In this document: one piece after another, positions 1,152 through 60,119 of the stretch
How positions within the stretch are numbered: position 1 is the first letter of the stretch
Layout of the letters: each line of letters starts with the position of its first letter
Origin: Tubulanus polymorphus
Taxonomy: Eukaryota; Animalia; Nemertea
Length of the DNA: 64,000 nt
Direction: 5' to 3'
Assembly: GCF_964204645.1 (NCBI RefSeq)
Contig: NC_134036.1
Location: forward strand, 5,052,600 to 5,116,599
Notes under the pieces: generated by a model
What the model saw: only the letters and a program-made list of their open reading frames with translations
What the model was told of the DNA's origin: nothing
Databases searched by the model: none
Made by a program: the position numbers and the translations under genes

Positions 1152-1196
1152 TTCGACGTTTCCGCAATATCCTAATGTCGGTCATCTTCGGGAATA
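1152..1196 (-). ncRNA. Degenerate minimal type-I hammerhead ribozyme motif (family B)
   Basis: Minus strand reads TATTC-CCGAAGA-T-GAC..TTAGGATATTGCG-GAAACGTC-GAAA, homologous to the copy at 60076. Core CTGANGA is mutated to CCGAAGA and helix II is disrupted. Confidence 0.6.
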
Positions 1197-1350
1197 CAGA
1201 GGGATACATTATTCCCATAAAAAGACGAATTGATTATGAAAATATGTCGGAATAGATGAAATAGATATAAAGATTAAATCTAATGAATTAGTCGAAACGG
1301 TGAAATCAACCACTAGTTCAAACTCGATATTTACAATGCAATCTTTTTAA

Positions 1351-1574
1351 GATAAAAACCCACTATGTACAATTTTAAAGAATTTTAGAATCGAGAATTT
1401 ATTTTTTTTCTCAAAAAATCTAAAACTTAAAATACACGTCAGGTGACGTCACACCTGACGATGATCCCTAGGGTGAGATCGAAACGTCGTGTATTTTAGA
1501 TTTTAGATTTTTTGAATGAACACAAATTCTCGATTTCATAAGTTCCTTTAATTTGTACATAGTGGGTTAATATC
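1351..1574. mobile_element. Palindromic (head-to-head) Penelope-like pLTR remnant, family A
   Basis: Imperfect inverted arms (AACCCACTATGTACAA...AAAATACACG / CGTGTATTTT...TTGTACATAGTGGGTT) with a hammerhead in the right arm; a homologous copy lies at 22340-22497. Confidence 0.7.
1451..1492 (+). ncRNA. Minimal type-I hammerhead ribozyme (family A)
   Basis: ACAC-CTGACGA-T-GATC(loop)GATC-GAAA-CGTC-GTGT: intact core, helix I ACAC/GTGT, helix II GATC/GATC, loopless helix III. Predicted cleavage after C1488. Confidence 0.85.
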
Positions 1575-3298
1575 CAATTAACCGTTCACCATGTTTGAGA
1601 ATGGTTATAGCACTGCTATCTCTCTTATCAAATAAAAACCACCTAGGACTAATAGATCAGAGATGTATTGTTCGAACGCGTGATTAGGCTACGTAACTAA
1701 TTTACCAGTCGATTACTGGTAAATCGATTACAGCATAAAAATGTTACACATTAATATGTAACAAAGCGTGCAATTTGGCAGGACATAAACAGAGCTATGT
1801 TTGGCTATGTTTACGAACTCAAATAAACAGAACTAGCAATACAACGACGAAGGCATTAATCGTAATATTCGATTTTGGAAATAAACTACTAGCTCAAATG
1901 AACAGTTTTTGCGGGCTGGTCTTTCATTTCGCATCAAAGTATTTTACCGAATTATCGATACTGATTCGGGCGAATTTTGATGCATAGTAGTCGGTGGCGC
2001 AGTAATGAGTTCGAAAGTTAATACGGTTAGTATTAGGAAAAAAGGTAGATTTTGAAAAGATGAAATGATATTCGATGATCTTACGAATAGACCGCGGGGA
2101 AAAAGGCGCGTGGATATATAGATAATATATAGAATGGATATATAGATAAGCAATCACGGCGGATCGGGACGTCTAGGGGCGGCGTGATCACGTCTATCTT
2201 GGAGTAATCATTCGACAAATGATCACTCCAAGCCGCTATATATAACGACATAACTCGAGCGACAATCAGCGAACTGATATCGACGGCGTTGACGTCGCGC
2301 GGGAGGCTCCGGCCGCCTGCGTATCGGTTCGTTTAGAATCAGCCGCGCCGCGGTGACAATTACCCAACGCCGAAGCGTTGATTGAACTTGTCTTGCGTCG
2401 GATGAGCGACGATCCCGCGGGACGCTCCGGTCCGATTAGTTTACAGGGATAGTCGTCGTCGTAAGGCGCGGATGTTTTCGGGAATAAGCGTTGTCAATGA
2501 TGAAGGTTTCTTTTTGATCGTACACACGAACTTCGTGAGTTGTCACTCGTATATAAGTAGGAATTGAACTACTGTATCGAGCCAGAAAGTGACCGTCCAT
2601 AATAATTAGCTAGAGTCCAATACTTAACCCGAGACATTTTTGCTAAAAGATTACAAACACCGAACATTTTATAGACTTTGATCGACGCAATAACATTAAA
2701 AAGATCGCAAATGTTCAATACTCTTCATCTGAGACAATTCTAATTGAAAATGAGCTAAAAACACACTGAACAAGATATTATACATTTTATCAGATTATTT
2801 TCGTGAAATACTGATCTTCTTAGCTCACAGGACTCCGCTTGACGTATTTCTAATTCGAAGTGCTGCAAACGCCAACTACAAACAACAGACGCGCTTCATC
2901 AGTACGATTTCATGAACTGATCTTCACAACACTTCATCACGTACGAGACATACATTTTGAAATGAAAACGAACTAAAAGCATACGACATTAGACATGTTT
3001 TAATCAGCGCGGTCGCCAAAACCGATCTTCTACACACACTTAACATGTGTAAAGCACTATTAACCTTTTCAAAGAATTTTTAATTGAAAATCGACCACGA
3101 ATCTCAGTGAGACGCATTTCATCAGTCTTTCTACTAGTCTTTCTTCGATTTATAACGGTGATGAACACGATCTTAGAAAGAATGATGTTCTGGCTTCAGA
3201 TGCGCGTTTAGATTAGGCAGGTTATAGGATAGAAAATATCTTTTCCCATCGGTGCCCGATTCGACCCGGTCACCGTCAAACGACATTCAAAAGGTTAC

Positions 3299-3590
3299 CC
3301 GCGGTAGAACCGCGGTATACCTCGTTCGCATCACCGCGCGTATCTTCTTTTGATAATAGCGGCGTACGAACCACCGCCGTCGCCGCCGCCGCAAGTGCAA
3401 AGCCGTGTTTAACGACGACATCTGTTTGCCCAGCCGCGCCACTCGACACGAACAGCGATACACGCGCCCGCCGGGATCGACACACCGGCGTGCTTTCAAA
3501 ACAATCATCGCATCCGATCGTCGACGAGCGTCACCGGGAGAAAAAATGAACACGTCGCGAACGTACTGAGACGATTCTGCCCAGTTTATA
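3299..3590 (-). promoter_or_regulatory. Candidate TATA/Inr promoter and first exon
   Basis: Minus-strand TATAAA (3590-3585), TCAGT Inr-like motif (3569-3565), GC-rich leader, donor GG|GTAACC after 3299. TATA-Inr spacing is slightly short. Confidence 0.35.
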
Positions 3591-6434
3591 CCCGGGTGAA
3601 ATTTTTGTCCGCGCCTAATTAGATTTTTCGATGGGTATTAATTAAAAATAGTGCCTAGTTAGATTTAGCGATGGGTTTTAATTGAAAAAGATAGCGTTAA
3701 GTATTTGCATACAGTAATTTGTCCGTGTAAAAATGAATTTCAATAAGTGCAATACCTGGTATGCTGTTTTGGCAATCGAGAATATTCCTTTTCAGGCAAA
3801 CGACGATCCACCCGGTGTCGCTAGTGTGCAGCGAAATAGAACGCCTTATCTTATCTCATTTCATCTTATCTTAGCTTATATTATCTTATATCTAACGTAT
3901 TATTTAGCGATTAGGAATTTCACTCGTGGTGGCAAGTAAAGACCCGCAAGGTACGCTGGTATCCCTTTCTTATTGACAAGCGATGATCCACTAGGTGTCG
4001 CTAGTGGGCAGTAAAGTAGGACGTCACGAACGGAAGCAGTAGTAATACTGTATAGTTACGTAGCTTGTCGTGACAAGTAAGGATCCGCCAGGTGTCGCTA
4101 GTGAGCCATGGAGCATCAGCTATTACAGCTTGTCTAGCGTTGAATGCAGACAATATGAATATATGATACCGTTTCCAAGGACGTATACAAATCGACCCCC
4201 GATACCACGAGTGCATCCGTTCTCAAATTCTTTCTCCGAAAACCTCATGCGTCTACGGACTTAACCACTCTTGTCTCGAAATGCCGTCGAGAAAGACCGA
4301 TCCGTGCGCTGAGGCCCTAAACGCACCCTCGCCCAGGCTTAGTCTCGAATCGCGCTTGGTTTGCGACAACAGACAATAGCCTCTAACGATACCGAAAAAA
4401 TAAAAAATATTCGCCACTGTTTTGAGAAACATCGACGACGAACACTTTGTGTGTGCGCTGATAATGTCTCAGACACGTGTTCCGCCGAACACAAGTGAAG
4501 TGTGAGCGATTGGTTTTTGAAAGTGAGCTGATAAAATGTGTAATATTTGGTGTTTGTAGATTAACAAATTGTAGATTAACAGATTGTAGATTGAAATTTT
4601 CGATTAAAAATGATGGAGTTCTGAACGCATGTGATGTGTGGGGGATCAGTTTTTTGAAAGTTTGCGCTGGTAAAATGGCTGGTGTCTGGCTTTTGTAGTT
4701 CATTTTCAATGAAAAAAAAGTCTCAAGTGGAGTTTTGTACAAATTTTAAGTGTGGATGATCAGCTTATGAAAGTGAGCTGATAAAGTTGTCAATATCTGG
4801 TGTTGTTGATAGTCTAATATCCTGCGTCTTAGACAGTCTATTGTCTGGTGTTTGTTGACAGTGTCTGGTATTTTTGATATCGCCTAATGCCTGGTGTTTG
4901 TGTTTAGAACATTCTCAATAACTTACATCGACGAATCGAACACACCAACATTCTTGCAAAAATGATCCAAGGAATGAACCAGTACTCCATTACGCCGTCG
5001 ATTTATATCTCTATTTTTCCAGCGACACCTGCCGCCGCGTCTCTCCGAACTGAACTAAAAAAAAAACTAAACCGCTTACTCGAAGATGTCAGTAAAAAAC
5101 TAAGACGGCGTGAAACTTGTAATAACATATCCGATCACGACAAAAAAGAACGCGCCAACGGCATTGCAAATTCAAAAGACGGTATCAATAGAGAGGGACA
5201 GCCGAGCTTCTTAATACCCGTCGGTCGTCATGTGTCGTCCGTAGAGAGCTTTAGGAATAAAAGGCCGCTATGTTATACAGACCATGGATTTCTCGTCCTC
5301 AAAGATACTATATCGCTTTAACGGTTGACCTTTATAGGTGTTGCATTCATAAATGAATGGTCGTATTCATTTCCTCGCTACATATCGTGGTCTTGAAGAT
5401 GCTACCGTTATAGATGGAATTGATCAACAATAGATGTTTCGAATGCGCTCATTATTTCCTGGCTATACATATTAGAGGCTGCATTTTTGCTTGTTCATAT
5501 GGTCTAAAAGGCAACGAATCTATATCTACAAGAGATAGGTTAAAAAATCTCAGAATCTCGAAATAGATGTATTCATCTACCAACCCCCCCCCCCCCCCCC
5601 CCTCCGCCCCGTTAACGCGGCTCCTTACACGAATCTCGGCAGTACTAAGTATCATTATGGGTAAGCCGCCTATCGAACGAGCCACGCCACTCGAGCTCGA
5701 CTTTCTTGTATCCACCCGAAACACGCGTCTATTGTTATATAGCTCGCAACGCGAAACTATAATCGCTATTATTATGTTTCGTGCGAAGTACGAGAAAACT
5801 CGGCGTCCGTGCGCGTAAGATCTTCGTCATCGCGCGCGCGAAAATTCTCATTCATTTTCGCTCGATTTCCTCCTTCGTGTTCCTTTCATATCCTTCGATA
5901 TAGCTTTTGTCTCGCGTCGCCTTTTCGCGTCGATCGTTCTAAACCAGCGCGATTATACGAACGAACCGAGAACCTGCGCTTACAATTCGTTTGATGAGAA
6001 CGTCTACCGTCGATTTCTTTCATTTTTGCTTATAGTTTTCGGTTTTTAGGCGGTCGCGTGTTCTACTTCTAAGAAGTGGCGTTACTTCATCCAACTGGAA
6101 AAGTCGTGGCGACGGGCGCGTAGTAAGTTTCGAGAAAAGTCGACAGGCAAACAATAGTGTTGTGTGTATAGCGATTCGTTCGAATCTTATGGGTTGTTGC
6201 TGATGACTCGTTGCGATGACAAGTAGATACGACGTAATCCCTCTGAAGTTGAAGTTCAAATTAAGCCGCGGCGGAGATATGAATCAACGCACGCCGAGCT
6301 CGCGCCTTTCAAAACCCGTCTTCCTCCGCGCTGTCGAGTCAATTAGCCGCATGAATATGCGCGCTCGCCTTTTTTTATGGACAAACGTGGAAACGAAATG
6401 AAAAGGAACCGGTAAAATCCGTAAGCTACTCTTA

Positions 6435-7042
6435 GTGTATACAATGGCGCCAGACTATTGAAGCCTCAACAAAACTAGATGCTTACGGAATTATTAAGCT
6501 GAATTGGGGGCGGGAAATATCTTCACTAGCATTACCATTTGACCTAAGGACAAATTTAATACGGTTCCGTTGTTCTAACCATAACCTACCGATTGAAACG
6601 GGAAGATATGAAAATATTCCCCGGAATGAACGACTTTGTACCAAATATGACCCACGAAAAATCGGCGACGAATACCATTTCATAATGGAGTGTACTTTTT
6701 TTGAAAGTTTAAGAAGTCGCTACATACCGCAACGACTAGTAGATATTCCTAACTTAAGAAAATTTATGGATCTTTTGACATCCCAAGACCCAAACATCTT
6801 GAGGAAGCTAGCAGTACTTATAAAAAAGGCACATAGCCTCATCTAGCCATCGCTGTGCACACACGCTCTAATTTCGTGTATAATGACATGTAGCCTATAG
6901 AAGAAGAAACTGTCACTATATATTATAAATGTAACCGGAGAAACCGTAATTGTATAACTGTTAATTGTTCATTTTATGTATCCTGTGCTCGAAAAAATAG
7001 TATAATTTCTAGAGTAATAAATTAAATCTGAATCTGAATCTG
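6435..7042 (+). mobile_element. 5'-truncated non-LTR retrotransposon (RTEX/CR1-group-like ORF2 C-terminus plus 3' UTR)
   Basis: Open frame 6442-6846: QWRQTIEASTKLDAY...RFRCSNHNLPIETGRYENIPRNERLCTKYDPRKIGDEYHFIMECTFF...LRKLAVLIKK*, the typical post-RT zinc-knuckle region. Ends in AATAAA and a (TCTGAA)n tail. Not in the ORF track because there is no start codon early enough. Confidence 0.88.
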
Positions 7043-7069
7043 TATAGGAATTAATTAACCCGCATAACC

Positions 7070-7790
7070 GAGGAACGGTTTGGAACGAACCCGCGCACTC
7101 GAACCGGGTTGAATGAGTCCGATCGAACTGGTGCAAAGTTGCGGAGATGGTTCGATAGTCGAATCCACGCAACCGTTCAACTGGACCCGGAGGCTCGAAC
7201 CCGCACGGCGGCGAAACGGACAGATTACACTACACTAACCATTCAACACCCGACTACGCACAGCTTTGATATGACCATCATATTATCAAGTGCGTTTCGC
7301 CCTGGAGCCGCTGCGATGATTGAACCCGTACAACAGTGTCAAACCGGATTCACAGTCGAATTAAACCCACACAAGTGCGAAAGTGGATCCGGCATCGAAC
7401 TGAACCCACACACTGTCGAACAAGATGCACAGTGGATTATTATGACGGCAATTCCGTGAACCTGGCAGATCAAACCAACAACCGTGGAATTAGGTCTAAA
7501 TACGAATCAACCTATAGCAGAAGTGTGAAAATGGGTCAAGAGTAGAATTAACCCACACATTTCCCGCGTAGGAAACGAGTGTTGAGAGATATAAAACCCA
7601 CACAACACTGTGGAACTGGATCCATATTCAAACTAAACGCGCGAAACTGTGGAACTCAGTCAATTAAAACTCAGACAACACTGTGGAACTGAGTCCAAGG
7701 TCAAATTAATCACTAACACCGTGGAACACAGTGCGTCTGAGATGAATTTTATCGAATCCCTCGAACCGGATCCCGCGAGTCAAACCCATA
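7070..7790. repeat. Degenerate short-period repeat (AACCCACACA..GTGGAACTGGATCC motifs)
   Basis: Recurring motifs shared with 15060-15720 and with the TIRs of the MITE at 30329. Confidence 0.55.
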
Positions 7791-8679
7791 CGAGCGGCAA
7801 TTATCCGGACAGACCCTCAATACTGTTTAACCAGGCGGCGCATCTATATCCAATCGACCGTCGTTACGACACGATCCGGCGCGCGATATCATCAGCCATG
7901 TCGATGATTATCATCATTTCGCCGAGCGCGATGTTGTTTGCGCTAATTATCAATTAGTTGCCGGCGTGTTTAACACTGTTCGAGAACGCGACGGTGCGCG
8001 GAATCGATACGGCCACGGCGAGAGAGAACAGCAGCAGCGGCGGCGGCGGCGGCCAGTCTCAGCCAGCCAGTCTCAGCCAGCACGCGATGTGAACACACAA
8101 CGTCACCGTCGTCATCGCTGCGGGCTCAGACCGCGAACAACGAATACGCATCAACGGACAGAGAATTCGTTTTAAGACGCGTGTATATCGTCGTGATAAT
8201 ATGATGCATATGGCCTGGATGCATTCATTCCGTTTTCGGTCAAACGAAAGTTCGAAATTCCGCGATATTATCCAGCAAAAGATGCCATGTCCTTCGGTAC
8301 GCCCGATAATGGCTAACAACAGTCTTTTACCGAAACGTCCGAAACGTTGTTCGATATATAACAAACCTTTTTACACGGGAAGTTTACATCTTTAGCTGAT
8401 TAATGTCGGATATCTTTATTATATAAAAATGCTGCATATTATAAGAATCCATACATTGTCACAGTACCCGCATAAAATATATACGCTATTTATTCATTTC
8501 CTAAAATCAGCGATCGGTCCAGCTACCAATAAGCGTTTTTTATTTAGGAGAAAAGTTCGACATTCGATTCTGACCGAAATTCACAAAGAAATTGACACGC
8601 GGAACACCGAGTATACCCAGCTATAGCATACCTGTCGGATCCTCGCGTGCCACGGGTGGAATCCTCGATTGCCACAGTA

Positions 8680-15206: not shown

Positions 15207-15213
15207 TATAATG

Positions 15214-15251
<38 letters not shown>

Positions 15252-15315: not shown

Positions 15316-15374
<59 letters not shown>

Positions 15375-17472: not shown

Positions 17473-17570
17473 AGGAGTAACCGCTACATTGCTGGGTAGT
17501 TTCTCCGAGTCGGGATTTCCATCGGAATGGCTCTTCAGATACCCAGTAGATGCCGCTAGTAGGTTTTCGG

Positions 17571-17709: not shown

Positions 17710-17740
<31 letters not shown>

Positions 17741-21340: not shown

Positions 21341-22372
21341 ATAGAATATTACTTAAATCACACCATAATCATTATGGTTCCTTTCACTTAAAAAAGTATG
21401 AAATTAATTCGATTATTCTAGTCCGTTCTTTCCTTGGCATATTTCATCGAATTTACGACATTCAACACAGCCGCTTTTAAATCATCATCTCCGCTATTCC
21501 CCTCACCCGACTGTGCGTGCGGACAATTCTATTAAATCAGTCATATTTTTCAATCACTGTTGAACTTACGTTATGAGATTTTTATCGGTAATAGGGCGGG
21601 TGGGAGTGCTTTTTCGGAGCGAAAACGACGCCCGTAGCGGGCTCGGCCGCATAATGTAACTACAACGGCATATTTGAAGGTAATTAATGAAGTTATCATC
21701 AAACTCGCGGTATATATCGAGCTAAGAGGATGGTATATACACATTTTAAATAATAATTAATTACACAGCCATGTGATTTACGCGTAATATGACACCGTTT
21801 TAATGGGCTCTACCCGCCCGAGCCTGTATATCGCCAACTATCAGCGGTGATGGTTGATATTGAAATTAATACGCTTCAACGCAACGGTCGTTCGGGAAAT
21901 GGCGATAAACCACGTCACCGAGAGGATGTAGCGAGCTTCCTGTTGCGACTATCGTATAGATGAGCCGCGTATCTAACTAACCCAGTGCCGTTCACCTGAC
22001 GAAAGTGAATACTAGTTAGTAGTACGTATGTTAATTCGGGCCCAGCTCGCTTCGAATTCGACGATGAAAACTAGTTTTCAAAATATACAATGCTATATAT
22101 GACTAGATAACACCGGCCACCAGACGGCGGATTCAATCGGATATTAGACCGCCGATTGCAAATACATGTTTTTATCTAAATCGCGCAATTCCCTATAGAC
22201 AATATTAAAAGATGACATTTTCTACGCTGAGCGTTTGGTAAAGCCTTGCTTGCACGGATCGATCTACTTTAGAAATAAAAATTCGTCTGGCTTCAATTGA
22301 AATTTACAAGAACAAAACAATAGAACAAAGTGAGTGATTATAAGATAAAAAAAGAGGTGTGACCTGAACAGT

Positions 22373-22414
22373 ACACCTGACGATGATATCTAGTGTGAGA
22401 TCGAAACGTCGTGT
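22373..22414 (+). ncRNA. Minimal type-I hammerhead ribozyme (family A, second copy)
   Basis: ACAC-CTGACGA-T-GATATC(loop)GAGATC-GAAA-CGTC-GTGT; downstream ~85 bp is homologous to 1489-1574. Confidence 0.82.
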
Positions 22415-22576
22415 TCTTATATTTTAGATTATTTCAATTAATAAATTCTCGATTTTAGATTTCTTTTAATTTTTAAAATAGTGGGCTTTTATCTTATCAT
22501 CTGTTCACCACGTTTGAGTGCGGTTATCGTACCGAAGTGAGTGATTAAAAAGTTGATCGCTTCCATTATCTTTTAA

Positions 22577-22862
22577 CCCTTTCAGTGCGTCTACACCACA
22601 GTGCGGTGTATAAATCAGTGACAGATTTTGCAAGTACACCGCAATGCTGTGTATTGATGTAATTACTAATTGGTAATCATCTCTCTTGAAAAATGGCAGC
22701 ACCAGTCAAACATAGAAATACTAGTAACTTACGATACACCGCGCCGTGGTGTAACCGCACTATAGTGGTATTCCCGTTATTCAACACACTAGGGTGGAAT
22801 TTCTAAAAATTTTCAAATTATCTCCAGCACTATAGGGTATTAATTACTCAGCACTGAAAGGG
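22577..22862. mobile_element. piggyBac-type MITE (286 bp)
   Basis: TIRs CCCTTTCAGTGC / GCACTGAAAGGG with TTAA TSD on both sides. Confidence 0.88.
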
Positions 22863-22976
22863 TTAATCATTATCATCTACTAATCTATTCCCCCTTTCAA
22901 CTTTTTTGTCACTATCTTTTTTCTATTGTTTTGTTCTTGTATACATTGCTTGTGTCATTCTCATGTCCCCAGCACT

Positions 22977-23018
22977 GAGCCTGATGATGGCTGATAGTCT
23001 TTAGCCGAAACGTTCCGC
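22977..23018 (+). ncRNA. Minimal hammerhead ribozyme motif (family C)
   Basis: CTGATGA-T-GGCTGA-tagtct-TTAGCC-GAAA-CGTT: core and 6-bp helix II intact; helix I poorly paired. Confidence 0.7.
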
Positions 23019-23469
23019 GAATATTATGTACTCTTCTATTCAAGTTTCTCGTGGCTATATTTATCGTGGGATTTCTCTCGTTAACTCTACCTCAAAGAAA
23101 TGTTCTAATTCAATCTATTAAAGTGTGTAAATTGACAGTCAGACTATGGGCGTTAGTTGAGATGCGTAAGGTCTATATTTTGTTACTGATTGAAAGCAAT
23201 TGAAGTTCCCCAGCACGGTGCTACGATTGAGAGAAGCGACGGTGAAATGATACGCTGGCATTCAAGGGGTTCGAACCCGGGACTCGTGCGTGGGAAGCAA
23301 GCCCGCTTTATAAACAGTTTACGAATAGAACTAATCCTAGTGGTTATGCATTTTGTAGCGTGTGCGTAAAATTTCCTCAATAGTCAATGCTTTAAAAGGG
23401 GTAATAATACCATAAATGTAAAACACTCTGAGCAGCCTGGCTGGATTTAGCGCTATATAAGACACATAT

Positions 23470-25480: not shown

Positions 25481-25981
25481 TTAAATCGAACAAAGGGAGG
25501 GAGGCAACATAGCGTAGAATTCCTTTCGCAGAAAAAAATACTCGGCATTTAAAATCTGCGACGACGGCGCGCGCATCAGAGAATATGTACATTACGACCA
25601 CGCGACGCTGGAGCCGTGAAAATCAACCTAACTCAATTTTCTCGATTCGGCTTTTCGAGACGTTTTCTTTTTTCACAGCAAATCTCACCCGGTCGAGTTG
25701 GAACCCGATGAGACGGGCTGTCGAAAAATATAATCATCCGGCGTGCTGGCGCGCGCGACAGACATTACCACCGCGGCTCATAGACCGCATTAGACAAACA
25801 TCACCGGCACCACCAGCAGCCACAGCAGCAGCAGCAGCAGCAGCTTTCTGCACGTAAATCCAGAAACTCGATGCTTATAATCGAATAAGTGGACGGCGTT
25901 GAAGTAGGTTTTCGCCTCAAAAAGCGGCGACGACCGCTTCTGAAGTGACGACAATTGCATCTTAAGGTTGACTTATTTCCA

Positions 25982-26220
<239 letters not shown>

Positions 26221-27972: not shown

Positions 27973-30328
27973 CCGAAATGCCATCGTACACGCCGGTTTA
28001 GGTAATTTTTCAAGGTTGTCATACGCAAAAAAAAAACAATATTTGGATACCGCGGTACAAGCCGTCTCATCGCTACTTCAAGGTGGTAAACAACATCCTT
28101 TAAAAAAGCGAAAAAACTTTCAAAAAACCTATTTGCGCGTTCATTCCACATCGAGCCGTGTCTATATCGAAATTACACGCTGGCAGCGATCGCGATAGCT
28201 GCGCGCTTTTATTATGTTTACCGACTGCGCAAACGAAAACGAATCGGCCGCTTGAAAAAATACGAAACCAGACAGTCGTTCAAACAATTGAGAAAACAGA
28301 GGCGTGTTTGTTCGCGCGCGCGTGTCGAAAGAGCCGAACGGGAGTCTTAAGAAAATTATCAGGTGTGTTTTACCGCGTCGTTCGTGCACTCGGGATAAGT
28401 CGCGGCGCCAATATTTGAGTTTCACCGACGAGCGTTTTAAAAAGTGGAGAACAGTATTCGCAGTGCGCATCCGAAAAGAGTTCGACTAGGGCATTTTAAC
28501 TTATTGAAACGAAACTTTGAACCACGCGGTCGTGTCTTCAAAAATATATACTTAGTCTCGGACTAATCTTGAAACCTAACTTTTGACTGCCTCAAAATGG
28601 TTGCAAGGCCCTGCGGCACTTAGTGACTCCACTCCAAAAGTGGTCTCAAATCTTAACACGTTTGTTACAAGCCGTTATATCGGCTATAGAATTAATACGG
28701 TCTTGGATAGATCTTCGATCGAAGCCTTGATTGCCTAAAAAAGGTCGGAAGGCCTGTTACACGGTCGCGACTCGACTCCAAAAGTGGTCGCAAAACTTAA
28801 GACTGTCCTTAAGCTGATAGATCGGCTATAGAATTAAGACGGTCTTTGATAGGTCTTCGATCTGAGCCTTGATTGCGTACGAATCAAGTCTTTGTAATAA
28901 TGGTATGTTGTTTAAACACATCGCATTTCTGACAAAGTAACAATAACCTTCGTTTTACGCAAAATCGCATCGTAAAAATTGAACGATGTAGGAAAATAGG
29001 ATATAGATTTGCCGGATCAAATTAAAGTATAAACTGAATATAGCCGCAAAGCAGCAGCGATAACGGGTTTTCTGCCGAGCAGGCGTCCTGCGCGTTTGGA
29101 CTGAATGGAATTTGAGAAACTGGTAGATTGCTTATTTTCTTAAAAAGCATGAACGGGTAAAAACCAAACTAACGGGAATTACATGAATCGACAGATGAAC
29201 GAGTGGAACTTCCAGTTTAGTTCTTTAAGAACGACTCGCTCGACTTAACTGAGACTAATCAAGTTGAATTCATTTTCATTTTTCATTTTTAATGTTCCAC
29301 AAAAACATGTTTTGCACAGAACATTCATACATTTCATTTTAACAGTAGATGGCATTGTACAGCGAAGCGAATCGTTGACAAGTTAACGTAAAGAGACACA
29401 TATACATGTTCGCTTGGCAAATATTACGGGACCTCGTTTACGCACCCCCGACTAATTTACAAAAGTTACTTAGTTGGAACGATAGTCATATTGAAAAAAA
29501 ACGCCGAAACAGGCACGATGATTAATCGGCGCACTTAATATTAAAGCGATCTAATTCGTTAATATCGCTAATTGCATCCGTGGAAAAAGAAACCCGTCGA
29601 CTCGAGTTTGCATAAAAGAAAACCGTGGTTATTTTTGCGCGTTAACGCAAAACGTAACCTTTCGACGAACTGCGCGCGGCTTCGGATTCGGTTCTTTTGA
29701 GCTGCTCGCCCGACGCTCGAGACGAAGATATCCCGCTCTTCCCGGGGGTCGCTGTCGGTTATCGGTTTTCGTTTCTCAATCGCTTCAGACGTATTCGTGA
29801 GTGGGATGGAAGCGTCGGGGGAAAAAGGGGAGAACGAGGTCTTCGTCGAAATTGAAGGCCCGATACTCTGCGTAATGAAATCGCGGTGAACGTATCGACA
29901 ATTGCTATTGTATTCGTTCCGTCGTTTTGGGGAAAGCGAGCTGACTACCGCGGTGTGTTGAGACCGGTAACGTATTTCGGGGTCGAATACGAATAGGATA
30001 TCATTTCGAGAAATATTAGACAATATTCGTCGCTTGCCTCGTTACTCGGGATTGGTGTAATACTACCCGGAGATCGAGGACAAAAAGACCGAGGATGATA
30101 TAGCGAAAATAGAGTAGACTTATAGTCGCATACGCCGTAATGACTAGAGCCTTCGGGTAAACGTTTGTGTCAAATACCGGGTAAATAAGTTTGCGAAGTA
30201 CAATAGGCGACGCTGACTCTTACCGCGGTAAATTTGAGACTGGCAAAATTCAACCGCCAGTTCGGTCTTTGTAAAGGTTTTAAACCGCGTAACGCGCAGT
30301 TTGCGGAAAGTCGACGTCGTATCCTTCC

Positions 30329-30438
30329 GGATCCAGTTCCACAGTCATGAGTTAGAGTTAAATCAGAGTTGAAATTAGTTCATTTTCGACGAGTTGAATC
30401 GGAGTCAAATCTTAACTCACAACTGTGGAACTGGGTCC
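30329..30438. mobile_element. ~110-bp MITE with ~26-bp TIRs
   Basis: GGATCCAGTTCCACAGT..GAGTTA / TAACTCACAACTGTGGAACTGGGTCC; related copies near 38520-38610 and 53906-53995. Confidence 0.75.
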
Positions 30439-31130
30439 CGAAGTCTAAAGGAGCAATCCGCGAAAATGTGCTCCCGCCAAAATCAATTTTGCGAAATGTT
30501 GGTTCTCGTCGGCGGCGCGGTGTTGTTTGCGCGGCGATGATCGCAGTTGACGCCGCGCAGAACGAAATCGAATTTTCGTCGCCACACGAGTCTCATAAAG
30601 ATCAGGAAACCTCGAATTGTTTCGCGTTTATGATTTTATCTCGTCGGCACGCGGGGTAACGCGAGAAGGGTGGCAATTTATAACCGTTCGGGGCGAATTG
30701 CTACCTATTTTCTTTTGTCGTCGGTCGTCGTTTTGCTTTGTTTTGTCGGTTCAGGTTACGGCTCGGCGGCGTCGTCGTTAAAGCTCGCCTTTCCGAACCG
30801 AGCGAAACAGCTTCGTAACAACGACAACAACGCAGAGGCCGCGCGTGCAAAGCGTCTCCGATTTTCGGAACAGTCTTTCCTCTCGAGGGACAATGGTTTC
30901 GCGAGTGCGCGTAGGCTAACCTGCCCTTGTCGACAAAAGGGTGTACAAATTCGAAATAACTATTTATCCGAGATGAAAATCTTTTTTCCGCCCCGAAAAT
31001 ACCGGTAGACGCAAGCGTGGGCTTAATATCCGTTGAAGGCAATTTCGTATTCGTAAAAACAAATTTATTTTTGATTTCTATTTTTTCAACGAAAAGTTGA
31101 ATCAGTGAACTTACAGCCAATGGTATATAT

Positions 31131-34005: not shown

Positions 34006-35229
34006 TGATTTTAACCTATACGTTCTCACGTTCGACTCCCTCCCTCCGAGCATCGGAAATCCGACGACAACCGGATAGTAATTAAGACTAATGAGACGAG
34101 CGCTAATTGAACGAGTTCATATTCTCTGAATGAACCGAGGTAAGCCGATAAGGGCTCCGCCGCGCGCCGCCTAATCCTTAGAAATGAAATAAAAAGTCTT
34201 TTCATCTCAGAAAGTTAGAATTACGTAATCGAACACGGCGGGATTTAGTGGGGTTTTTTTTCTGTAATTCCCTATAGAGAACGGATACTCGATACCGCTT
34301 TAGTCGCAATTAATTAAAGGTTTAAAATTCGCCACGGGGCCGTTTGAATAAACGTCGAAAGGCAGCGCATTTTTATTTCAAATGCAAATCTGACGGCGCT
34401 GCGATACGGTATCGCAGTCATTTTTATTATACGCTCCTGCCGACGTGTACCGGGACGCGTTAATCACACACCAAGGCTTTGCTTGGCCCACACTGAAAGC
34501 TACTGTTCTCTCTCTCTCTTTTTTTTATAATTGTGCTTTTAATTAGAAAAAATTGTAAATTTTATTGTTTCTTTTCTCTCGACCTGTGTACATAGCCTGT
34601 CATGCTTTCTGTGAAATAAATTTGAACTTGAACTTGAACACACTGTTTCTGTAGCTGTACTCCGATTTCCGTTCTCAAAATCGAACCACTTGTTTCGCCC
34701 CCGGCAGCTGGTGCGGTGGGTTTATAAGGGTCACTCAATCAAAAAAAAATCGAATGGAATTTACCGACTAAATCGATGACAGGGTCAATCCCTATTTTAA
34801 GATCAGAAGAAAGAAAAAAAATTAAATCACACACTATTTTTTGGACTAGTGAAACCACGATTTATTCATCACGTGTTTTAAATAATATTGTACGTACGTC
34901 CCCGTACTAAGCATATCGAAATAGTCCGAAATGCGTATACATAAATATTGAATCGACGTTTCGACTATATCCTAAACGTTATCGACAACGTTACGAGTTA
35001 GCCGAGAGAGAATATAGATCGATCAAGCAATCAGATGTCCTATATACAAACTACGTGAGTACGTTCAACGTTAGAACAATTAAAAACCACCCTCCCTCGG
35101 CAGGGATTCGAACCCAATGGCGTCCGGGGTGAAAACTTAAATTTGCAAATACGTCCGTTGACATTCATGCTTCAAAAGGATGATGAGTGCAAGTGCAGCG
35201 AATTGAGTAGATAGTTGTAACAATAGTAA

Positions 35230-35472: not shown

Positions 35473-35571
35473 GGTTTTACAGACTGGTGTTACCTTTAAC
35501 CCGAGGGCTAACTTAATACATTTTCAATTGAATTAGCCCACGGGTAAAAGGTAATACCGGTCTATAAAACC
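35473..35571. mobile_element. Short foldback/MITE hairpin
   Basis: ~39-bp imperfect inverted arms GGTTTTACAGACTGGTGTTACCTTTAACCCG / CGGGTAAAAGGTAATACCGGTCTATAAAACC. Confidence 0.7.
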
Positions 35572-50909: not shown

Positions 50910-50970
50910 CGAATGAATGAATGAATGAATGAATGAATGAATGAATGAATGAATGAATGAATGCTTTATT
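50910..50970 (-). repeat. (TTCA)n tail after AATAAA, retroposon 3' end
   Basis: Minus strand AATAAAGCATTCATTCATTC..; the same tail is on the plus strand at 63731-63762. Confidence 0.7.
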
Positions 50971-51155
50971 CTGTCTAATAACAAATAATTGAAATACACA
51001 TACAGTCAGCCCCCGATATACCGCCCACAAAAGCGTAACTTCAAGAGCCAATTCGACTCAATGAAAATAATTTTCATCCTATATTATTCATTTATTTCGT
51101 GATAATCTGTTGCAATCACTTCAAAAACACAGTACACCGCATTAACATATCGAAT

Positions 51156-51467
51156 CTAATCAATTTCTAATTTCTTATCTGTATCACCATTGGGCCATTC
51201 AACGATCAAACCGATGAAGGCACTCTCGTAGCCGTTGTCTGCGTTGCAAATGTACCGTTGTACAGATTCGCGTTTCGCTGGTTTCAGACCATCGATTGTC
51301 AGCCTAGCTTTCGTCAGATTTCCGTCGTAAGTCGTCGCGATATGGGTGTTACCCGTCTCGGTCAATACGGTGCCTCCATACTCCGGCTGCCAGTTCGATG
51401 ATGTCGTCGTTTGGTAAAATGTGATCACGGCCCTCGGTTCCGAAGTGACTTCGCATTCGAACGCGAT
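51156..51467 (-). CDS. Terminal exon of an Ig-domain protein
   Basis: TTTTGTAG| acceptor; IAFECEVTSEPRAVITFYQ...ARLTIDGL...RYICNADNGY...LIV* contains B- and F-strand cysteines; joins upstream exon in phase 0. Confidence 0.8.
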   Translation of the reverse strand: MAFECEVTSEPRAVITFYQTTTSSNWQPEYGGTVLTETGNTHIATTYDGNLTKARLTIDGLKPAKRESVQRYICNADNGYESAFIGLIVEWPNGDTDKKLEID

Positions 51468-53227: not shown

Positions 53228-53808
53228 CTGATTCGTTGCGTTTCTATCGGCCAACAATATTTCCTTATCTTGCTTGCCACCGGTGAACTCGATCGGCGTG
53301 TAAACCCTCGTTTCAAACGACTTTCTCGCGAACGGCGCCTTGTATCCAGCTTCGACGGTGAACGAGTTATTCGCGTCATCGTCGGACCAGAAACAGACCC
53401 TGGCCGTCGTCAAATCGTACCCGCAGTAGGCGTCGCTCGTCAATTTCTCGGCGACGCCACGCTCGTCGGTTTTAAGCACTCGCACGTGCGGACGGGGCCA
53501 TCCGTCGACCATCGCGTAGATCATATCGCCCGTTCGCGAGACCGGCACGTTGCCGTAGTACTCCAACGTGTCGGTGCCCGGCGAGTTTCTGATAATCCGC
53601 GGTATCGTTTTCGAGCTGTACACTTTCACGTTATTGACTTTACCCCAAGTTCCCGACCCGACCAAGTGATTGACAACGCAATGCGCGAAAATAAAATTGA
53701 ACCCGAAAACAAAACAGTACATGCCTTCGTCGCTAGGTGTCGCCTCGCTGACTACCATTTCGGGTCGTACTACGCGCACCTTTCTCGAGCTCAACCAATT
53801 GAAACTCA
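53228..53808 (-). CDS. Internal exon of the same Ig-domain protein
   Basis: TTTATTTTCAG| acceptor (phase 1), CAG|GTGAGT donor (phase 0), 581 nt open; Ig-like motifs ATPSDEGMYC and VDGWPRPHVRV. Confidence 0.78.
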
Positions 53809-54085
53809 CTGAAAATAAAAATCGCAACTAGACTCATTATACTGCCCGTTTTTAAAAACGATCAAAATCCGAAGTAAACGATATATTTTCACGATCTGAA
53901 TTTTCGGGATCCAGTACACCGCAGTTGTGAGTTACAGTCAACCTTAGTCGGGCTGTGATCAGGTAGTTTTCTAACTCACAACTCGGGAATGGAACATGAT
54001 CGAAAATTGCTGTCGTCGTTATAAATATGAATGACACTGTGATTCGTGTACGAATCTGCGAAACAATCTTTTTGCCAGACGAGTC

Positions 54086-54115
54086 TTCCTGACGATGACT
54101 AGCCGAAACGTCGAA
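54086..54115 (+). ncRNA. Minimal hammerhead motif with collapsed helix II
   Basis: TTC-CTGACGA-T-GACTAGCC-GAAA-CGTC-GAA; core and helix I intact. Confidence 0.6.
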
Positions 54116-54130
54116 AATGAATCATATTAA

Positions 54131-55719
54131 AGGGTAACTGACACTCTTTTTAAATTTTGAAATTTAATGTATTCTATTGATCTATAGATTTTCAACCGTT
54201 CCGTTCAAAAATGTTTTAGTTTACGCGCAATTTGTGATTCTGTAACATGATTTTTGACCTCATTTCGTTGTTTACATCGCTTACAGCAGGTGCGCGCTGC
54301 AACGTCATTAAAGGGACATCTGAGAAATAGCGTCCATAGAAATGCGTTGAATTTTGGGGAAACTGCGTGTATTTTCTGTTATATCTCAATGCTAGTTTGT
54401 TTTACAGCTTTGAAACTGGCCAGGGAGGTAAAATGATCTATTGTCTACCGCATAAACCTATGAGCAATGAGTAATTTGAATGAGTAATTTGAATAGGCTA
54501 TATCGATCAAAATGAAGATGCAGATTTCAATCCGCTGCTATGAAGCTATTAAAGTATACTATGCTAAGCTCTCAGCACTGTTACTGCTGCTCCATAGTTC
54601 ACCTATAGTTCAGCATCACAAGCATGCTATACAACAGTGTCTTATAAGCACTCACAGATGTCCATCTCAATAAAGAATAAATAAATTCATATCCATTTAC
54701 TATTTTTCATAGTCATTTAAGACTGATTGCATTTTGTGTGTTAAGGGTTGACTGTGAGCATATTATTTTCTTTATTGCATTTCTCTTTTTTTTCTTTTCT
54801 CTTTTGAGGGACCTGTTTTATACAAACTATTCCTTAGTTTCTACAGGCCCCTCCAGGTCTAATTTACTGTATTTTGTATTATGCTTTGTACACTATGCTG
54901 TAAATTATATTTGAAAAATAAAGTGTTCAAATCAAATCAAATCAAGACTAAGTAGGTAGTTTGAAAACTGACACTTCAAAACTCAACAAAAACTTTCAAT
55001 AAATTTCTACAGCCTTTAAAACAAATATTCAAAGAGATAATGTTTTTCGATTCAAGTTTCACGCTGCGGAAGAGTTTTGATAGATTACATCACAAATCGT
55101 TCACAAACATTATTTGTAAGTTTTTAGATAGGATCGATGAGGAAATAATTTCGTGACCAAAGCCGCTACCAATTATACGAGGTGTATTTCAAGCGAAGAA
55201 TTGAAATTATTCCTGCGGCTAATTTTGTCTAAAATTCATCAGTTCATTAGTCAAAATATCCTTGGTATTAGATCTAACCATGATCTTCAAACACGAAATG
55301 ATTTATACATCCGTGTTCCTTGCTGTCTACTAGAAAATACCATGGATTGCTATTCAAATCCTATTTCTTGCGCTTACTTAGTTTGAACGGATGTGGTCCG
55401 TCCAAATTTCTTTTAATTTTTAATGTCAAGTAGGTATAGAAATTATGTTGAATTGCTCGTGTGGCTTATTCCCTATTCATCTCTATAGACAACATTTCCG
55501 AGCCAGCCATCTCTTTAGTGACATAGTTCTACTAATAGACACTGTACCACTCGTTCGGCAGAAGCAATGTATACACTGAACAGGTGCGCGAACATCAAAA
55601 TCATCAATTCTGACTAGTTTGAATAGATTTTTCCCTATTTTGAAATCACCAAGCCTTATTGTACGCTGTTATTTAGTGTAAAAAGTAGAAAATCTCTAAA
55701 AAAAAGTGTCAGTTACCCT
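54131..55719. mobile_element. Kolobok-type non-autonomous DNA element (~1.59 kb)
   Basis: TIRs AGGGTAACTGACACT / AGTGTCAGTTACCCT, TTAA TSD on both sides, purine-purine 5' terminus; contains nested retroposon tails. Confidence 0.8.
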
Positions 55720-56349
55720 TTAACTCAGGGAGACATTCTGTACTATTTATTCTTAGAGCATCAATTCAGCTTCATCCCAAGCGGTCGCTGATACCGACCA
55801 ATATTTTTCACGAAGTTTCCACGTCCACCGCGCCTGAAACCGCGTTTCGACCATAGTCCGTGCCAGCTCGAATGGTCGATTTTCTCGTTCCATTTTATCG
55901 ACATTTCGGTGACGAGCGAATATGCCGAACTCCGTTGCATGTTCTGCAATTAACACGATGCATGCCGTATTGTTCGTAACAATGCTGCGTCTTCGCCATT
56001 CGTTGTGCTAATGATAAATCGTTGGGAAGAATGATTTTACTGAAATTTGCATATAGATATTTTCCATGGCGAGTGCTTTTTCTGCGAAGAAAATAAATGC
56101 TCGTCGATAATCGACATGAATTGGTCGCACGGTTCATCGGCGCCGTCTCCGATGAATAATAATGGTGCAACCTGAGCGAGCCTTAGTCGCATTTGTATAA
56201 GTCGTCAACATTTTAATGAAGCTTTTTTCTCTTATTTTCTTCCGTTTTATATTTTTGATCACTGAAGTCGCCACCATTTGTATTTTTAGTTCCATTTACT
56301 AAGTATAAGTTATCATTTGCTCAAGTCGTGATTTGAACCTTCTACGAAC

Positions 56350-56415
56350 CTTCTTGGCTTCACCGATGTGAACTAAAACGATCGATACGATAAGTAACTT
56401 GTAGTAGATCATCAT
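56350..56415 (-). CDS. Candidate signal-peptide exon of the Ig-domain gene
   Basis: Acceptor CTTATTTCAG| at 56428, then MMIYYKLLIVSIVLVHIGEA-KK; donor position uncertain (AAG|GTTCGT or phase-1 G|GTGAAG). Confidence 0.5.
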
Positions 56416-56640
56416 TGTTGGTAAAACCTGAAATAAGATAGAGCCAATTTATCAAACATAAACCATTCAAAGAGCATATATTTTGGCGAATCTGTCCAAA
56501 AAGGTATGTTCGGGAATACTGATATCGTCCGCGTTATAATCATTGACGAAACACTCCGTGTCCGGGTTGTAAAAACAATATAAAATCTACGGACACCAAG
56601 AATAAAAAGAGTGGACTGTTTCCTTGAGCTAGCGTTGTTT

Positions 56641-56682
56641 ATTCAACGTTTCGACAATATCCTAATAGGTATCCTCAGGAAT
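56641..56682 (-). ncRNA. Minimal hammerhead motif (family B) in a ~160-bp tandem unit
   Basis: Minus strand ATTC-CTGAGGA-T-ACCTAT-TAGGAT-ATTGTC-GAAA-CGTT-GAAT; core and helix I intact, helix II mismatched. Confidence 0.68.
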
Positions 56683-59080
56683 GTTGTCCTCATTATAACC
56701 ATCGATGAAACACTCCGAGTCCGTGTTGTAAAGACAAAATAAAATCTATGCACACTGACAATAGAACGTTTTGTGAAATGTTTTTGTGAGCTAGAAGTTG
56801 ATATCAACGTTGGGACTATATTTTGACTATTCGACAATTCCCAGTGTATGGGCGACAAAAGTAGAACATGGGCAACGGGCTGGAACTGGAGATAGATTGA
56901 CGCTAAGCTAGCTCAAATCTACACGTTCGAGCAACTGATTGTATCCAGCCAGTTATTAACCTCGAAAGGAATTACCAGCGAAAAGTTTCAGTTTCAGTTT
57001 CAAAGTTTTTTCGCGGATCTTTGAGAAAATAAGCTTAGAAAAAAAGAATAACTTTTAATATCAGGACAGTATTGAATCCTAAATTACATGTCAGCACATG
57101 TGGTGACATGTATAATTTGTAACACGTTTAATCGCAATTGATACGTTTAGATACATTGATCCAGACTGCCCAGCGAGGCGGGACTTGTTCCTTTTCCCAA
57201 ACTGGAACTTCCGATTATCTCGACAGTCCATGGACCTCGTGTCTTTTAAACTTGCTTTCATGATGCGAACATCTACGTAAGTTATTTTGATTCCCGCGGC
57301 CCCGATACATAATCGAAGACACAAATGTCCGAGAAGGTGCGAAAGTGCAATAACACTCACCCTGATTAACAATTAGGGATTGCGATTGAGCATTCTCAAG
57401 AAGTTTGCATGTCGCGATTTTATTTCCCACAAAGGATTTGCGCACGCGCAGCAATGAATGATATAGCAATGAGAACAACCGCAATTATACTATATCCACA
57501 CAGTGTCGCCCCTTGTGTCGTTTAGCCGACATTACATAATTTGACGTTACACTTAGACATTTTGACGGTGAACTTTTGCAGATTTTTAAGGTAATTTTCG
57601 CCGATACCAGTGCTATATCTCTCTTGCGCTGTGTTATCGCAATGGGTCGAAAAAATATAAAAGCATTATTCTTTATGTAATTGTTCATAATGAACGTAAA
57701 TGCACGCGTGTCTGGCTGGTTGGCAAATTATTCATGCCAATTTCCGTTGTAAATTGCGTAATTATTGCCCGATGTTATCAGAAATTGGTTGACGTGCAAT
57801 GATCGACACGAAAACAAGCCCCCAATTCAACCCAATTGCGCATGGTTCGGAAAATAGCGTTTCATTTTTGATATTGCAAATAACAATGGTGCTGGTTGGA
57901 ACAATGAAGTTTGCACAATCGGTAATAATAATAATAGTTTACTTGTGCAATTAATGATAACGTATAGTGGCTGTGGGCGTGTATATCGGAAAAAACTGAT
58001 TTTATCCAGATCGTTCATTCATTAGATTAAGTTTATCGCATACGTCATGTATTTGATATCAGTTGTTGAAATTATATTGATCCGCAGCTAAATTCTATTC
58101 TCAAAAAGATGAAACGATCTAATACGTATATGCAGTTGTCTCGGTACGTTTTGGTAAATACATCGTTTTTGTTGTGTATCGTAAACAACTGCCCGCCTTA
58201 ATGGTTGTTCGTCTCGAACGTTTATCTATACTTGTATCAGGCGAGGTGTCTAAATTTTTGACGGCAATTACGGTGCTACGTGTAGTTATGAGAGGAATTC
58301 GCAACTGGTAATGAGACATTATAAAATAAACCTATGAAACACGCCGACCCTTAATCTACCAATAAATCGATCATTAAGAGTAATTCGTATTATTGTATTT
58401 ACCAGAAGTGGACGTTTTTGTGTGTTTCAATTTACATATGTACTTATTATGGAAAAATAACGTAAGCGAGAAAGATGATATTTCGGCTAATATCATCTAT
58501 TACTGTTTAGACAAAATTGAATATTGCTCGTTATGGGAATTGTGGTTATTGTATAAGTTTTAAAATGAACGAATTTGAGGGTTGGAATAGCAACAAATTC
58601 GAGGGTTGGAATGGCAGTATGTAATTGTATCGGTGCGGTTGAGAGGCCACAGGCACTTAGATATGGTCTTTGTGACCGTGTTAGTAAGTAAAAATTGGGG
58701 GTTTGATGCCAGAAGGATGAAGTTTGAGGCTAGGTAGGTTTTTGGGTAATATACTAGAAAATCTTTTTCTATATAAATGGGGGTTTCATACGAGAAGTAT
58801 GAAATATGAGACTAGTTTGGTTTTTGGGCAAAAATGTTGGGTATTTTTTTTCTATATTAATGATGAATGATAATACACTTGAAAATCGTGATAGATTCTG
58901 CCATTTTCTCCGAATTTCTTAAAACTTCGATTTGAAATTTGCAATTCCACATAAGTTTATGCCAAAAATTCAACATTTTTTCGCAGGCGTCAAATGATTT
59001 ATTACAATTAATTTTCTTGTTATACTAAGGAAAGAGATAAAAATATTAAGTGTAAACAATGTACAGATGAAATATTTGAT

Positions 59081-59305
59081 ATGAAAAGATGTATAGGTTG
59101 TGGTGAATTAACAAAATATTCGAAATTTCATAAAAGAAAAGGGTCGTTTAAGGATGGTTTAGTTTATAAATGTAAAAGATGTGTTCGTGAATTGCAAAAA
59201 GATTGTAGAGAAAGGGTAAAAGAATATAAAGAATATCTTAAGTGTTTAGATGAGGAAAAAATGATTATGAATATTGTGATCAATGTAAGCAGTCATCACC
59301 TTTAG
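59081..59305 (+). CDS. Small CxxC-CxxC zinc-finger ORF of viral/phage type
   Basis: KRCIGCGELTKYSKFHKRKGSFKDGLVYKCKRC resembles the zinc finger seen N-terminal to endonuclease VII/HNH proteins and in large DNA virus ORFs (recognised from memory, not searched). Confidence 0.55.
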   Translation: MKRCIGCGELTKYSKFHKRKGSFKDGLVYKCKRCVRELQKDCRERVKEYKEYLKCLDEEKMIMNIVINVSSHHL

Positions 59306-59485
59306 TTTGTTTTAAAATTCAATATAAAATATCAAGAATTTGTGAATGTTGTATTGAATTTAATAAATCTAATTCGATTTAAAGAATATTTAGGTAGACA
59401 TGCATGAGGTTAGGTAGGTAAAATATATCAAGTAGAAATGAGGTTGGGTAGGTCAAAAAACCTTTGGTAAATTCCTTTTATATAA

Positions 59486-59830
59486 ATGCAGAGAAATCAA
59501 ACCAATGGAAATAGCAATGAAATATCCTCAATGAAATTGAATGAATTAAATGCAAGATTCGCGCCCAAAAAAATAAGAATTTAAATTTGAAAAATTAAAT
59601 GAATTATCAGTAGATGATGAATATCATATTGATAAACAAGAAAAAATTGATACTACATACATCATGAAGGATTAAATAGCAAGCATAAATGTAGAACTAT
59701 ATTAGCTGAAAGATAGATGCAATTAACAGATGAAGAATTAGTTGAGTTAAGTAATAATAATGTTTATTCGAAATATAATGGAAAAGATGAAGATGGTTGC
59801 CATTTAATAGAATTTATTGAACCTGAATGA
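59486..59830 (+). pseudogene. Disrupted small ORF of the AT-rich segment
   Basis: MQRNQ..KLNELNARF..*FEKLNELSVDDEYHIDKQEKIDTTY..MQLTDEELVELSNNNVYSKYNGKDEDGCHLIEF* with stops and a frameshift. Confidence 0.45.
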
Positions 59831-60075
59831 TAACATGTAACCGAAATAGATTAGATATCAAGTAACCGAAATGAATTAAATATAAAAGTAGTGAGATATT
59901 GATTTAAAATTAATTTTGTAAATATTGTTTTCGAGTTTAGCTCTTTTTGATGAAGAAGTGAAGTATCATTCAGATTTAATTGTAAAAAATCTTTAAAATA
60001 AATGCAAGATAAATTAAAAGTATATAGAATATATGTTGATTCTAGAAAACTTACAAATTGTTGTTGTATCTCCTG

Positions 60076-60119
60076 TATTCCTGAAGATGACTGTTAGGAT
60101 ATAGTCGAAACGTTGAATA
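60076..60119 (+). ncRNA. Minimal type-I hammerhead ribozyme (family B, best-preserved copy)
   Basis: TATTC-CTGAAGA-T-GACTGT-TAGGAT-ATAGTC-GAAA-CGTT-GAATA: 5-bp helix I, 6-bp helix II, intact core. Confidence 0.87.

Follow-up and report, generated by a model that had tools for sequence, protein, structure and literature searches.

Minimal hammerhead ribozymes in a 64-kb stretch of the Tubulanus polymorphus genome as probable remnants of Penelope-like elements

The stretch of the nemertean Tubulanus polymorphus genome analyzed here (64,000 nt; contig NC_134036.1, positions 5,052,600 to 5,116,599; hereafter the window) carries several minimal type-I hammerhead ribozyme motifs. With a probability of about 0.9, these motifs derive from the pseudo-long terminal repeats (pLTRs) of Penelope-like elements (PLEs), and the window holds dead-on-arrival fragments of such elements. 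An original prediction had listed eight sites of about three families, which it ascribed to non-autonomous ribozyme-bearing retroposons. All eight sites were confirmed, either where they had been located or a few bases away, and three families, termed A, B and C in the following, were indeed recovered. At least three related PLE lineages with hammerheads, corresponding to these families, are present in the genome.

The parents of the window copies were found elsewhere in the genome. A GIY-YIG profile search returned at least 150 matches, many of them within open frames of 817–841 amino acids, and 13 of the 20 GIY-YIG loci that were fetched are followed, on the same strand, by a hammerhead at a distance of a few hundred bp. 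In tandem PLE units the hammerheads are 2,856–2,857 bp apart (a 2.86-kb unit), and head-to-head tandem pairs are also present. Each unit contains one stop-to-stop open reading frame (ORF), of 817 amino acids in family B and 833 amino acids in family C, and the ORFs of both families are intact many times in the genome. Pfam domains RVT_1 and, C-terminally, GIY-YIG were identified in this order in the ORFs of family B, family C and a fourth lineage (D). A single ORF with reverse transcriptase (RT) and C-terminal GIY-YIG is the criterion for canonical endonuclease-bearing (EN+) PLEs; the parents of B, C and D possess such an ORF, and none of these parents is in the window. In families B and C, the hammerhead is located ~325 nt after the stop codon and the 3′ end of the element (long 3′ end) 104–110 nt past the cleavage site; in tandems, the ATG of the next ORF directly follows this end. 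Family A was linked, in one long copy, to an interrupted homologous PLE ORF with 54–56% amino acid identity to those of B and C, its hammerhead lying ~85 nt after the ORF end and followed by a tail of ~118 nt to the long 3′ end. The fourth lineage (G000:C4:49000-58999) has an 820-amino-acid ORF in a unit of ~5.5 kb and a shorter hammerhead of 29 nt, with a 3-bp helix II and A instead of U after the first box. The linked RT/GIY-YIG ORFs that the original prediction had suggested to look for genome-wide were thus obtained for B and C, and in interrupted form for A. It had also stated that no such ORF is visible in the window, in agreement with a tblastn search of the window with three PLE ORFs from this genome, which detected no RT or GIY-YIG remnant at E ≤ 0.01.

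Pattern searches were employed to compare the occurrence of the motif with chance. The loose pattern (CTGANGA, 6–34 nt, GAAAC) has nine matches in the window against 1.04 expected, and none of 100 dinucleotide-preserving shuffles reaches nine. The strict pattern, in which CTGANGAT is followed after 10–26 nt by CGAAACGTY and T is required after the first box, matches five window sites, 1455-1488(+), 22377-22410(+), 22981-23014(+), 56645-56678(-) and 60081-60114(+), while 0.00 matches are expected from the shuffles; the motif counts are hence higher than in shuffled sequence for both patterns, as had been anticipated. In the whole genome (268 Mb), 3,618 strict matches were counted as compared to a single match for the reversed control, and exact helix-specific patterns gave 607 copies of family A, 559 of family B and 1,691 of family C with zero for the reversed controls. 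The genome-average density of the strict motif is ~0.86 per 64 kb. The window is several-fold richer, which is expected from the repeat-rich nature of the stretch. A covariance model was trained on 43 distinct copies with 8-nt flanks, five from the window and 38 from other genomic loci. It reports seven window sites at E < 0.001, namely the five strict sites, which sat in the training alignment and match the model by construction, together with 54081-54120(+) and 34955-34984(-). Two weak relics, 1147-1199(-) and 8295-8356(+), were also picked up in the window; the genome-wide search with the model scored 150 candidates, which does not amount to a count.

These counts bear on another alternative, namely that a short degenerate consensus is matched by chance in AT-rich repetitive DNA, without any meaning as a ribozyme. 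Two loose-pattern matches, 17499-17538(-) and 51272-51317(-), are without family features and fit the chance rate of about one per window, and the lack of a hammerhead match in Rfam (see below) would also suit this explanation. As a general account of the motifs it has practically no credibility, as it is already refuted by the genome counts, the shuffles and the covariation described next, with compensatory changes in both helices. The conservation of the ribozyme above its flanks and its fixed position relative to the RT/GIY-YIG ORFs are equally at odds with chance.

The alignment of the 43 copies displays the diagnostic features of minimal type-I hammerheads of the Penelope type, as originally proposed. 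The CUGANGA box, the U directly after the box (T16), GAAA, C15.2 and U16.1 are invariant, and G16.2 is conserved in at least 90% of the copies. A cleavable UH is present, as GUC or GUU. The core-adjacent pair (G10.1–C11.1, columns 17:34) is G–C in 38 of the 43 copies. The U following A9, between A9 and position 10.1, is unpaired, helix II has 6–7 bp and helix I has 4–5 bp, while helix III is replaced by the self-complementary ACGU at positions 15.2–16.2. Helix II is 96% paired and five of its six pairs are altered on both sides between the families (GAUCUC/GAGAUC in family A, GGCUAA/UUAGCC and GGCUGUU/AACAGCC in family B, GACUAU/AUAGUC in family C). Helix I, with the stems ACAC/GUGU, CCAC/GUGG and UAUUC/GAAUA, is 73.5% paired and has both-side changes in four of five pairs. 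Overall, 85.8% of the cells are paired, compared with 24–47% when the 3′ partners are slid by 1–3 columns, and the covariation score is 0.534 as against at most 0.145 in the slid controls. The covariation of helices across genomic copies that the original prediction had called for was therefore found in both helices.

Conservation in randomly chosen family-A copies points in the same direction. Helix II and loop 2, which are unconstrained by the search pattern, are 97.6% identical while the adjacent tail is 81.9% identical, which points to the ribozyme being under selection in the source elements. In four window copies the hammerhead secondary structure is within 1–2.5 kcal/mol of the minimum free energy, which is no evidence of catalysis; the hammerhead structure of the 56645(-) copy is outside that range. 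Another feature of the alignment is that loop 2 (columns 23–28) has a conserved U-A-G start and usually ends with U in families A, B and C, and that the U-A-G start is held although the helix II stems beneath it covary. Loop 2 may be a candidate site for tertiary contacts or protein binding.

The anatomy of the copies is informative about their mode of insertion. Families A and C have two alternative 3′ ends, 35–38 nt apart, and the difference between them holds a small stem-loop. Of 20 family-A copies picked by the ribozyme pattern alone, 12 take the form of head-to-head pairs and five stand alone; wherever the outer ends of a pair were read, one arm has the long end and the other arm the short end, and the target duplications, where readable by eye, are 9–14 bp. 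In the head-to-head pairs of families A, B and C, the ribozymes are mostly 5–80 nt apart. The interpretation of family A as a 265-bp palindromic element resembling a miniature inverted-repeat transposable element (MITE), or as a ribozyme with long helix I, was rejected, as the junctions vary and the arms are opposite-oriented PLE tails.

On the basis of this anatomy and of in vitro experiments published for a Poseidon PLE, the following steps of insertion may be proposed. The PLE protein would cut both strands of the target. Reverse transcription would begin at one of two internal sites ~35–38 nt apart, giving rise to the optional tail extension, and would frequently end early, so that short 3′-end copies are left, often inverted head-to-head and with target duplications of 9–14 bp. 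In the source elements the ribozyme presumably cuts tandem transcripts after GUC or GUU, for which two ribozyme copies would pair via the palindromic ACGU, possibly aided by the element protein as in Anolis. The isolated relics of the window, several of which are visibly broken, are unlikely to cleave.

Compared with the ORF-linked copy, 17 of the 20 sampled family-A copies have their 5′ edge 0–8 nt upstream of the CUGA box, where the 5′ strand of helix I is located. Neither such a sharp edge nor the close spacing of the head-to-head pairs in all three families is expected if a 2.9-kb template is truncated at random. The edge suggests either a discrete template RNA or a strong reverse transcriptase stop. 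A tentative and on balance doubtful proposal is that the short PLE copies are copies of a discrete RNA of ~150–160 nt, extending from the 5′ edge of the ribozyme to the internal RT start sites. As one reading, a pLTR transcription start or a processing site may be located at the 5′ strand of helix I; in Drosophila virilis Penelope, transcription starts inside the pLTR (PMC2377424). If the proposal is true, priming at the 5′-proximal start site on the pLTR transcript would mass-produce ribozyme-plus-tail mini-elements, and these could seed the arrays with 167-bp and 69-bp periods (retrozymes) described below.

Within the window, family A is represented by a head-to-head pair and by a complete insertion. 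The pair spans 1348..1612 with arms at 1348..1440(-) and 1451..1612(+). The inverted arm is tail only, its short-form 3′ end is outermost at 1348, and from the opposite-strand self-match and the alignments its homology ends at about the ribozyme cleavage site. The forward arm consists of the helix I 5′ strand ACAC, the hammerhead at 1455-1488 (69.6 bits) and a tail with the long-form 3′ end; its core is intact, helix I has 4 bp, helix II has five of six bp and the cut is predicted after C1488. The filler at the junction (1438-1450) contains the palindrome GTGACGTCAC, which resembles a cAMP-response element and is probably junction filler or a product of microhomology. The complete insertion, 22340..22534(+), is composed of a 12-nt inverted stub, a 21-nt filler, ACAC, a hammerhead at 22377-22410 (65.6 bits) and a long-form tail, and is flanked by a perfect 12-bp target-site duplication (22328-22339 and 22535-22546). 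At 21988-22012, a family-A helix I 5′ strand and CTGACGA are fused to a helix I 3′ strand (15.6 bits, E = 0.02); this match could be a deletion relic or chance.

Three family-B remnants were located. A 5′-truncated tail of ~220 bp at 22881..23101(+) (BLAST 81.5% over 211 nt to the family B unit) has its hammerhead at 22981-23014 (51.5 bits), with intact core and 6-bp helix II, while helix I is weakened by a C–C at 2.1:1.1. An 8-bp candidate for its target duplication was rejected, the word being part of the element's own sequence. A fragment from upstream of the ribozyme, 22305..22346(-), is without hammerhead (BLAST 88% over 43 nt). The third, 8294..8345(+), is a degenerate hammerhead relic absent from the earlier list; its first box reads CCGATAA, and it scores 10 bits with the model and 80% over 45 nt in BLAST to the family B reference.

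The best preserved family-C copy is the 5′-truncated tail at 60056..60189(+), with an intact hammerhead at 60081-60114 (61.6 bits; helix I 5 bp, helix II 6 bp) and a cut predicted after U60114. It has a 21-nt internal deletion in the tail, which extends to the long-form stem-loop (BLAST 90% over 92 nt). The cuts after 1488 and 60114, as put forward earlier, are at the correct H17 positions by prediction. The half copy reported near 34953(-) is a family-C copy truncated within the ribozyme (34953..34984(-), 20 bits, model positions 13–42), retaining only loop 2, the helix II 3′ strand and the GAAACGTC box. Likewise, the site described as core-mutated at 1152(-) is a degenerate family-C relic at 1147..1199(-), with CCGAAGA in place of CUGAAGA in the core and GCG preceding the GAAA box (BLAST 80% over 45 nt to the family C unit; 11.3 bits, E = 0.47).

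Two sites that had been counted as hammerhead motifs stand in part. The relic at 54081..54120(+) has both boxes (28.4 bits, 10 model positions missing), but the motif at 54086 has lost helix II and loop 2, measures 24 nt instead of 34 and cannot fold. The repeat that starts 12–15 nt downstream (~54124) is a different element. The site placed at 56641(-) is a strict match, 56645-56678(-), but its helix II is decayed with three of six pairs left. It belongs to a fragment of a 167-bp tandem family related to family C, 56495..56794(-), which comprises ~1.9 head-to-tail units: the direct repeats 56794-56660 and 56632-56495 are ~162 nt apart, and the second ribozyme (~56495-56530) is degenerate.

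Several other features of the window were observed beside these copies. Two dispersed repeat families with copies 85–91% identical, 60174-60400 and 54124-54230, adjoin hammerhead relics, and the latter begins sharply on its 5′ side. The repeat of ~170 bp at 22700-22870 is very abundant (2,976 first-look genome candidates; scored copies 88–95% identical); it has no relation to the hammerhead elements and is possibly SINE-like (short interspersed element). The long near-perfect hairpins at 30323-30444 and 35473-35571, which have weak Rfam scores to unrelated miRNA models, may be MITE-like palindromes. Long (AT)n microsatellite tracts occupy 25974-26220, and the GC skew changes from +0.17 at 16–20 kb to −0.29 at 20–24 kb. 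Overlapping long ORFs on both strands at 17.4–18.1 kb and 23.4–24.5 kb suggest low-complexity or strand-biased repeats.

Genomic arrays homologous to the 56.6-kb site have a strict 167-bp period and are mostly on one contig, with ten consecutive units near C8:372,231-373,914. Characterized by search matches and box spacing, these arrays account for most of the 138 pairs of GAAACGTY and CUGANGAT boxes at 167-bp spacing, against 11 in the control. An anchored pattern for intact ribozymes in this family gave only two matches, the anchor probably differing from the genomic units. A unit of 167 bp leaves no room for an ORF, and the tail of the unit shows homology to the family-C tail. By this organization the family would be structurally an animal non-LTR retrozyme, or retrozyme-like. 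Family-C hammerheads at 69-bp spacing also occur in the genome.

These arrays are part of the support for the strongest alternative, in which the window copies are independent non-autonomous ribozyme retroposons (retrozymes or SINE-like elements) that spread from their own short RNA. The 56.6-kb fragment belongs to the ORF-less family with arrays elsewhere, the 69-bp spacing of family-C hammerheads and the sharp 5′ edge of family A are in line with it, and a 2026 preprint derives animal retrozymes from PLE pLTRs (10.64898/2026.07.22.740005). As an explanation of the window as a whole, we regard it as unlikely. Homology connects the tails to the 3′ ends of PLEs that carry an ORF in the same genome. 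The B and C copies of the window start at different distances upstream of the ribozyme (~100 and ~25 nt), and the only same-family tandem in the window is the decayed 56.6-kb fragment. Moreover, the variable junctions of the inverted pairs indicate independent insertions by the PLE machinery. The original claim of several non-autonomous families is therefore only partly borne out: the 56.6-kb site with its 167-bp family fits it, but most window copies are 5′-truncated tails of the PLEs of families A, B and C; for family A, the sharp 5′ edge could mean a discrete short template RNA.

Amniotes carry conserved intronic hammerheads, and one may ask if the motifs are host-recruited ribozymes that process host transcripts in a similar way. 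Nothing specific favors this possibility, apart from several copies with intact core and helices, and we consider it very improbable. Target duplications border the copies, which come from families with hundreds to thousands of members, and decay has affected half of those in the window. With 81–90% identity to the family references, the window copies look like neutral relics. When the longest ORFs of the window were scanned with Pfam, no meaningful domains and no recognizable host gene emerged.

Taken together, the homology of the tails to PLE 3′ ends, the position of the hammerheads relative to the ORFs and the signatures of insertion lead us to favor the derivation from PLE pLTRs, and the following points weigh against it. 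Cleavage by the present hammerheads is predicted from sequence alone, and the PLE hammerheads examined in vitro so far were poor at cleavage, dimers included (PMC4209133). The covariation stems from only ~4–5 independent subfamilies, which means few independent compensatory events. The sole parent found for family A is interrupted by an insertion and does not have an intact ORF, and no family assignment was obtained for the 54.1-kb relic. Finally, Rfam detects no hammerhead in the window, neither at the gathering score nor at E ≤ 10. This is expected for motifs without the helix III hairpin, and the silence of Rfam is a limit of its models rather than absence of the motif.

The hammerheads described here closely resemble those reported for metazoan PLEs. 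Cervera and de la Peña (2014) proposed dimeric action on the basis of ACGU in place of helix III (PMC4209133), and minimal hammerheads in metazoan PLE pLTRs are attributed to Lunse et al. (2017) in a citing passage of PMC6765202. Common to both sets (PMC4209133) are the type I topology, the absence of a helix III hairpin, the dimer-permitting palindromic ACGU, an extra unpaired nucleotide after A9, the G10.1–C11.1 pair, a long helix II and a short helix I. Their genomic pattern is also common, with mostly single truncated copies, some opposite-strand pairs and few in full PLEs. The pairs are 100–700 bp apart in Schistosoma and mostly 5–80 nt apart in T. polymorphus, where the hammerheads form families of their own in a new host genome and have the U-A-G start of loop 2 common to A, B and C. 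The hallmarks of PLEs include strong 5′ truncation, an adjacent inverted 5′-truncated copy and a tail of 30–40 bp at one end (PMC8557442); pLTR tandems, inverted truncated copies and the one-end tail are all present in this genome.

The closest biochemical reference is the Poseidon PLE of Anolis carolinensis (Frangieh et al. 2024, PMC11167929), the protein of which cuts and extends both strands and assists ribozyme cleavage, and for which two adjacent internal RT starts delimit the tail. The two cDNA starts, ~30–40 nt apart at a stem-loop, match the optional tail found here, the cleavage and extension of both strands fit the inverted pairs, and tandems with pLTRs occur in both systems. In the Anolis element, the starts lie 111–118 nt inside the ORF and the ribozyme over the start codon; here, in contrast, the long 3′ end is just before the ATG and the ribozyme ~105–110 nt upstream of it.

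Like metazoan non-LTR retrozymes (Cervera and de la Peña 2020, PMC7229834; Li et al. 2026, preprint), which are head-to-tail repeats of roughly 170–400 bp without an ORF and are expressed as small circular RNAs, the 167-bp family is ORF-less and arranged head-to-tail; its units, homologous to the PLE pLTR, would each have a type-I hammerhead, as judged from the regular spacing of both boxes. The window differs from these elements, as it has only ~1.9 decayed units and its other copies are not tandem. The schistosome Sm-alpha and Sj-alpha elements are SINE-like hammerhead elements in which the Pol III head resembles a tRNA and helix III is canonical. Family A is similarly short, dispersed, high-copy and hammerhead-bearing, whereas its units begin with the ribozyme itself and its tail is common to a PLE.

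Relics are all that the window itself offers, and in other respects it is ordinary. The significance lies in the genome around it, where at least 3,600 near-intact minimal hammerheads are missed entirely by standard Rfam annotation. The main families are each traceable to a PLE parent, and the genome is in this way a further, well-resolved case of a phenomenon already known. The alternative 3′ ends, the long and short ends of the pairs and the clean target duplications provide in-genome support for the PLE integration model established in vitro. Moreover, T. polymorphus combines autonomous PLEs and truncated tails with ORF-less arrays of homologous sequence at 167-bp and 69-bp periods, which makes this genome a convenient system for testing the proposed PLE origin of animal retrozymes.

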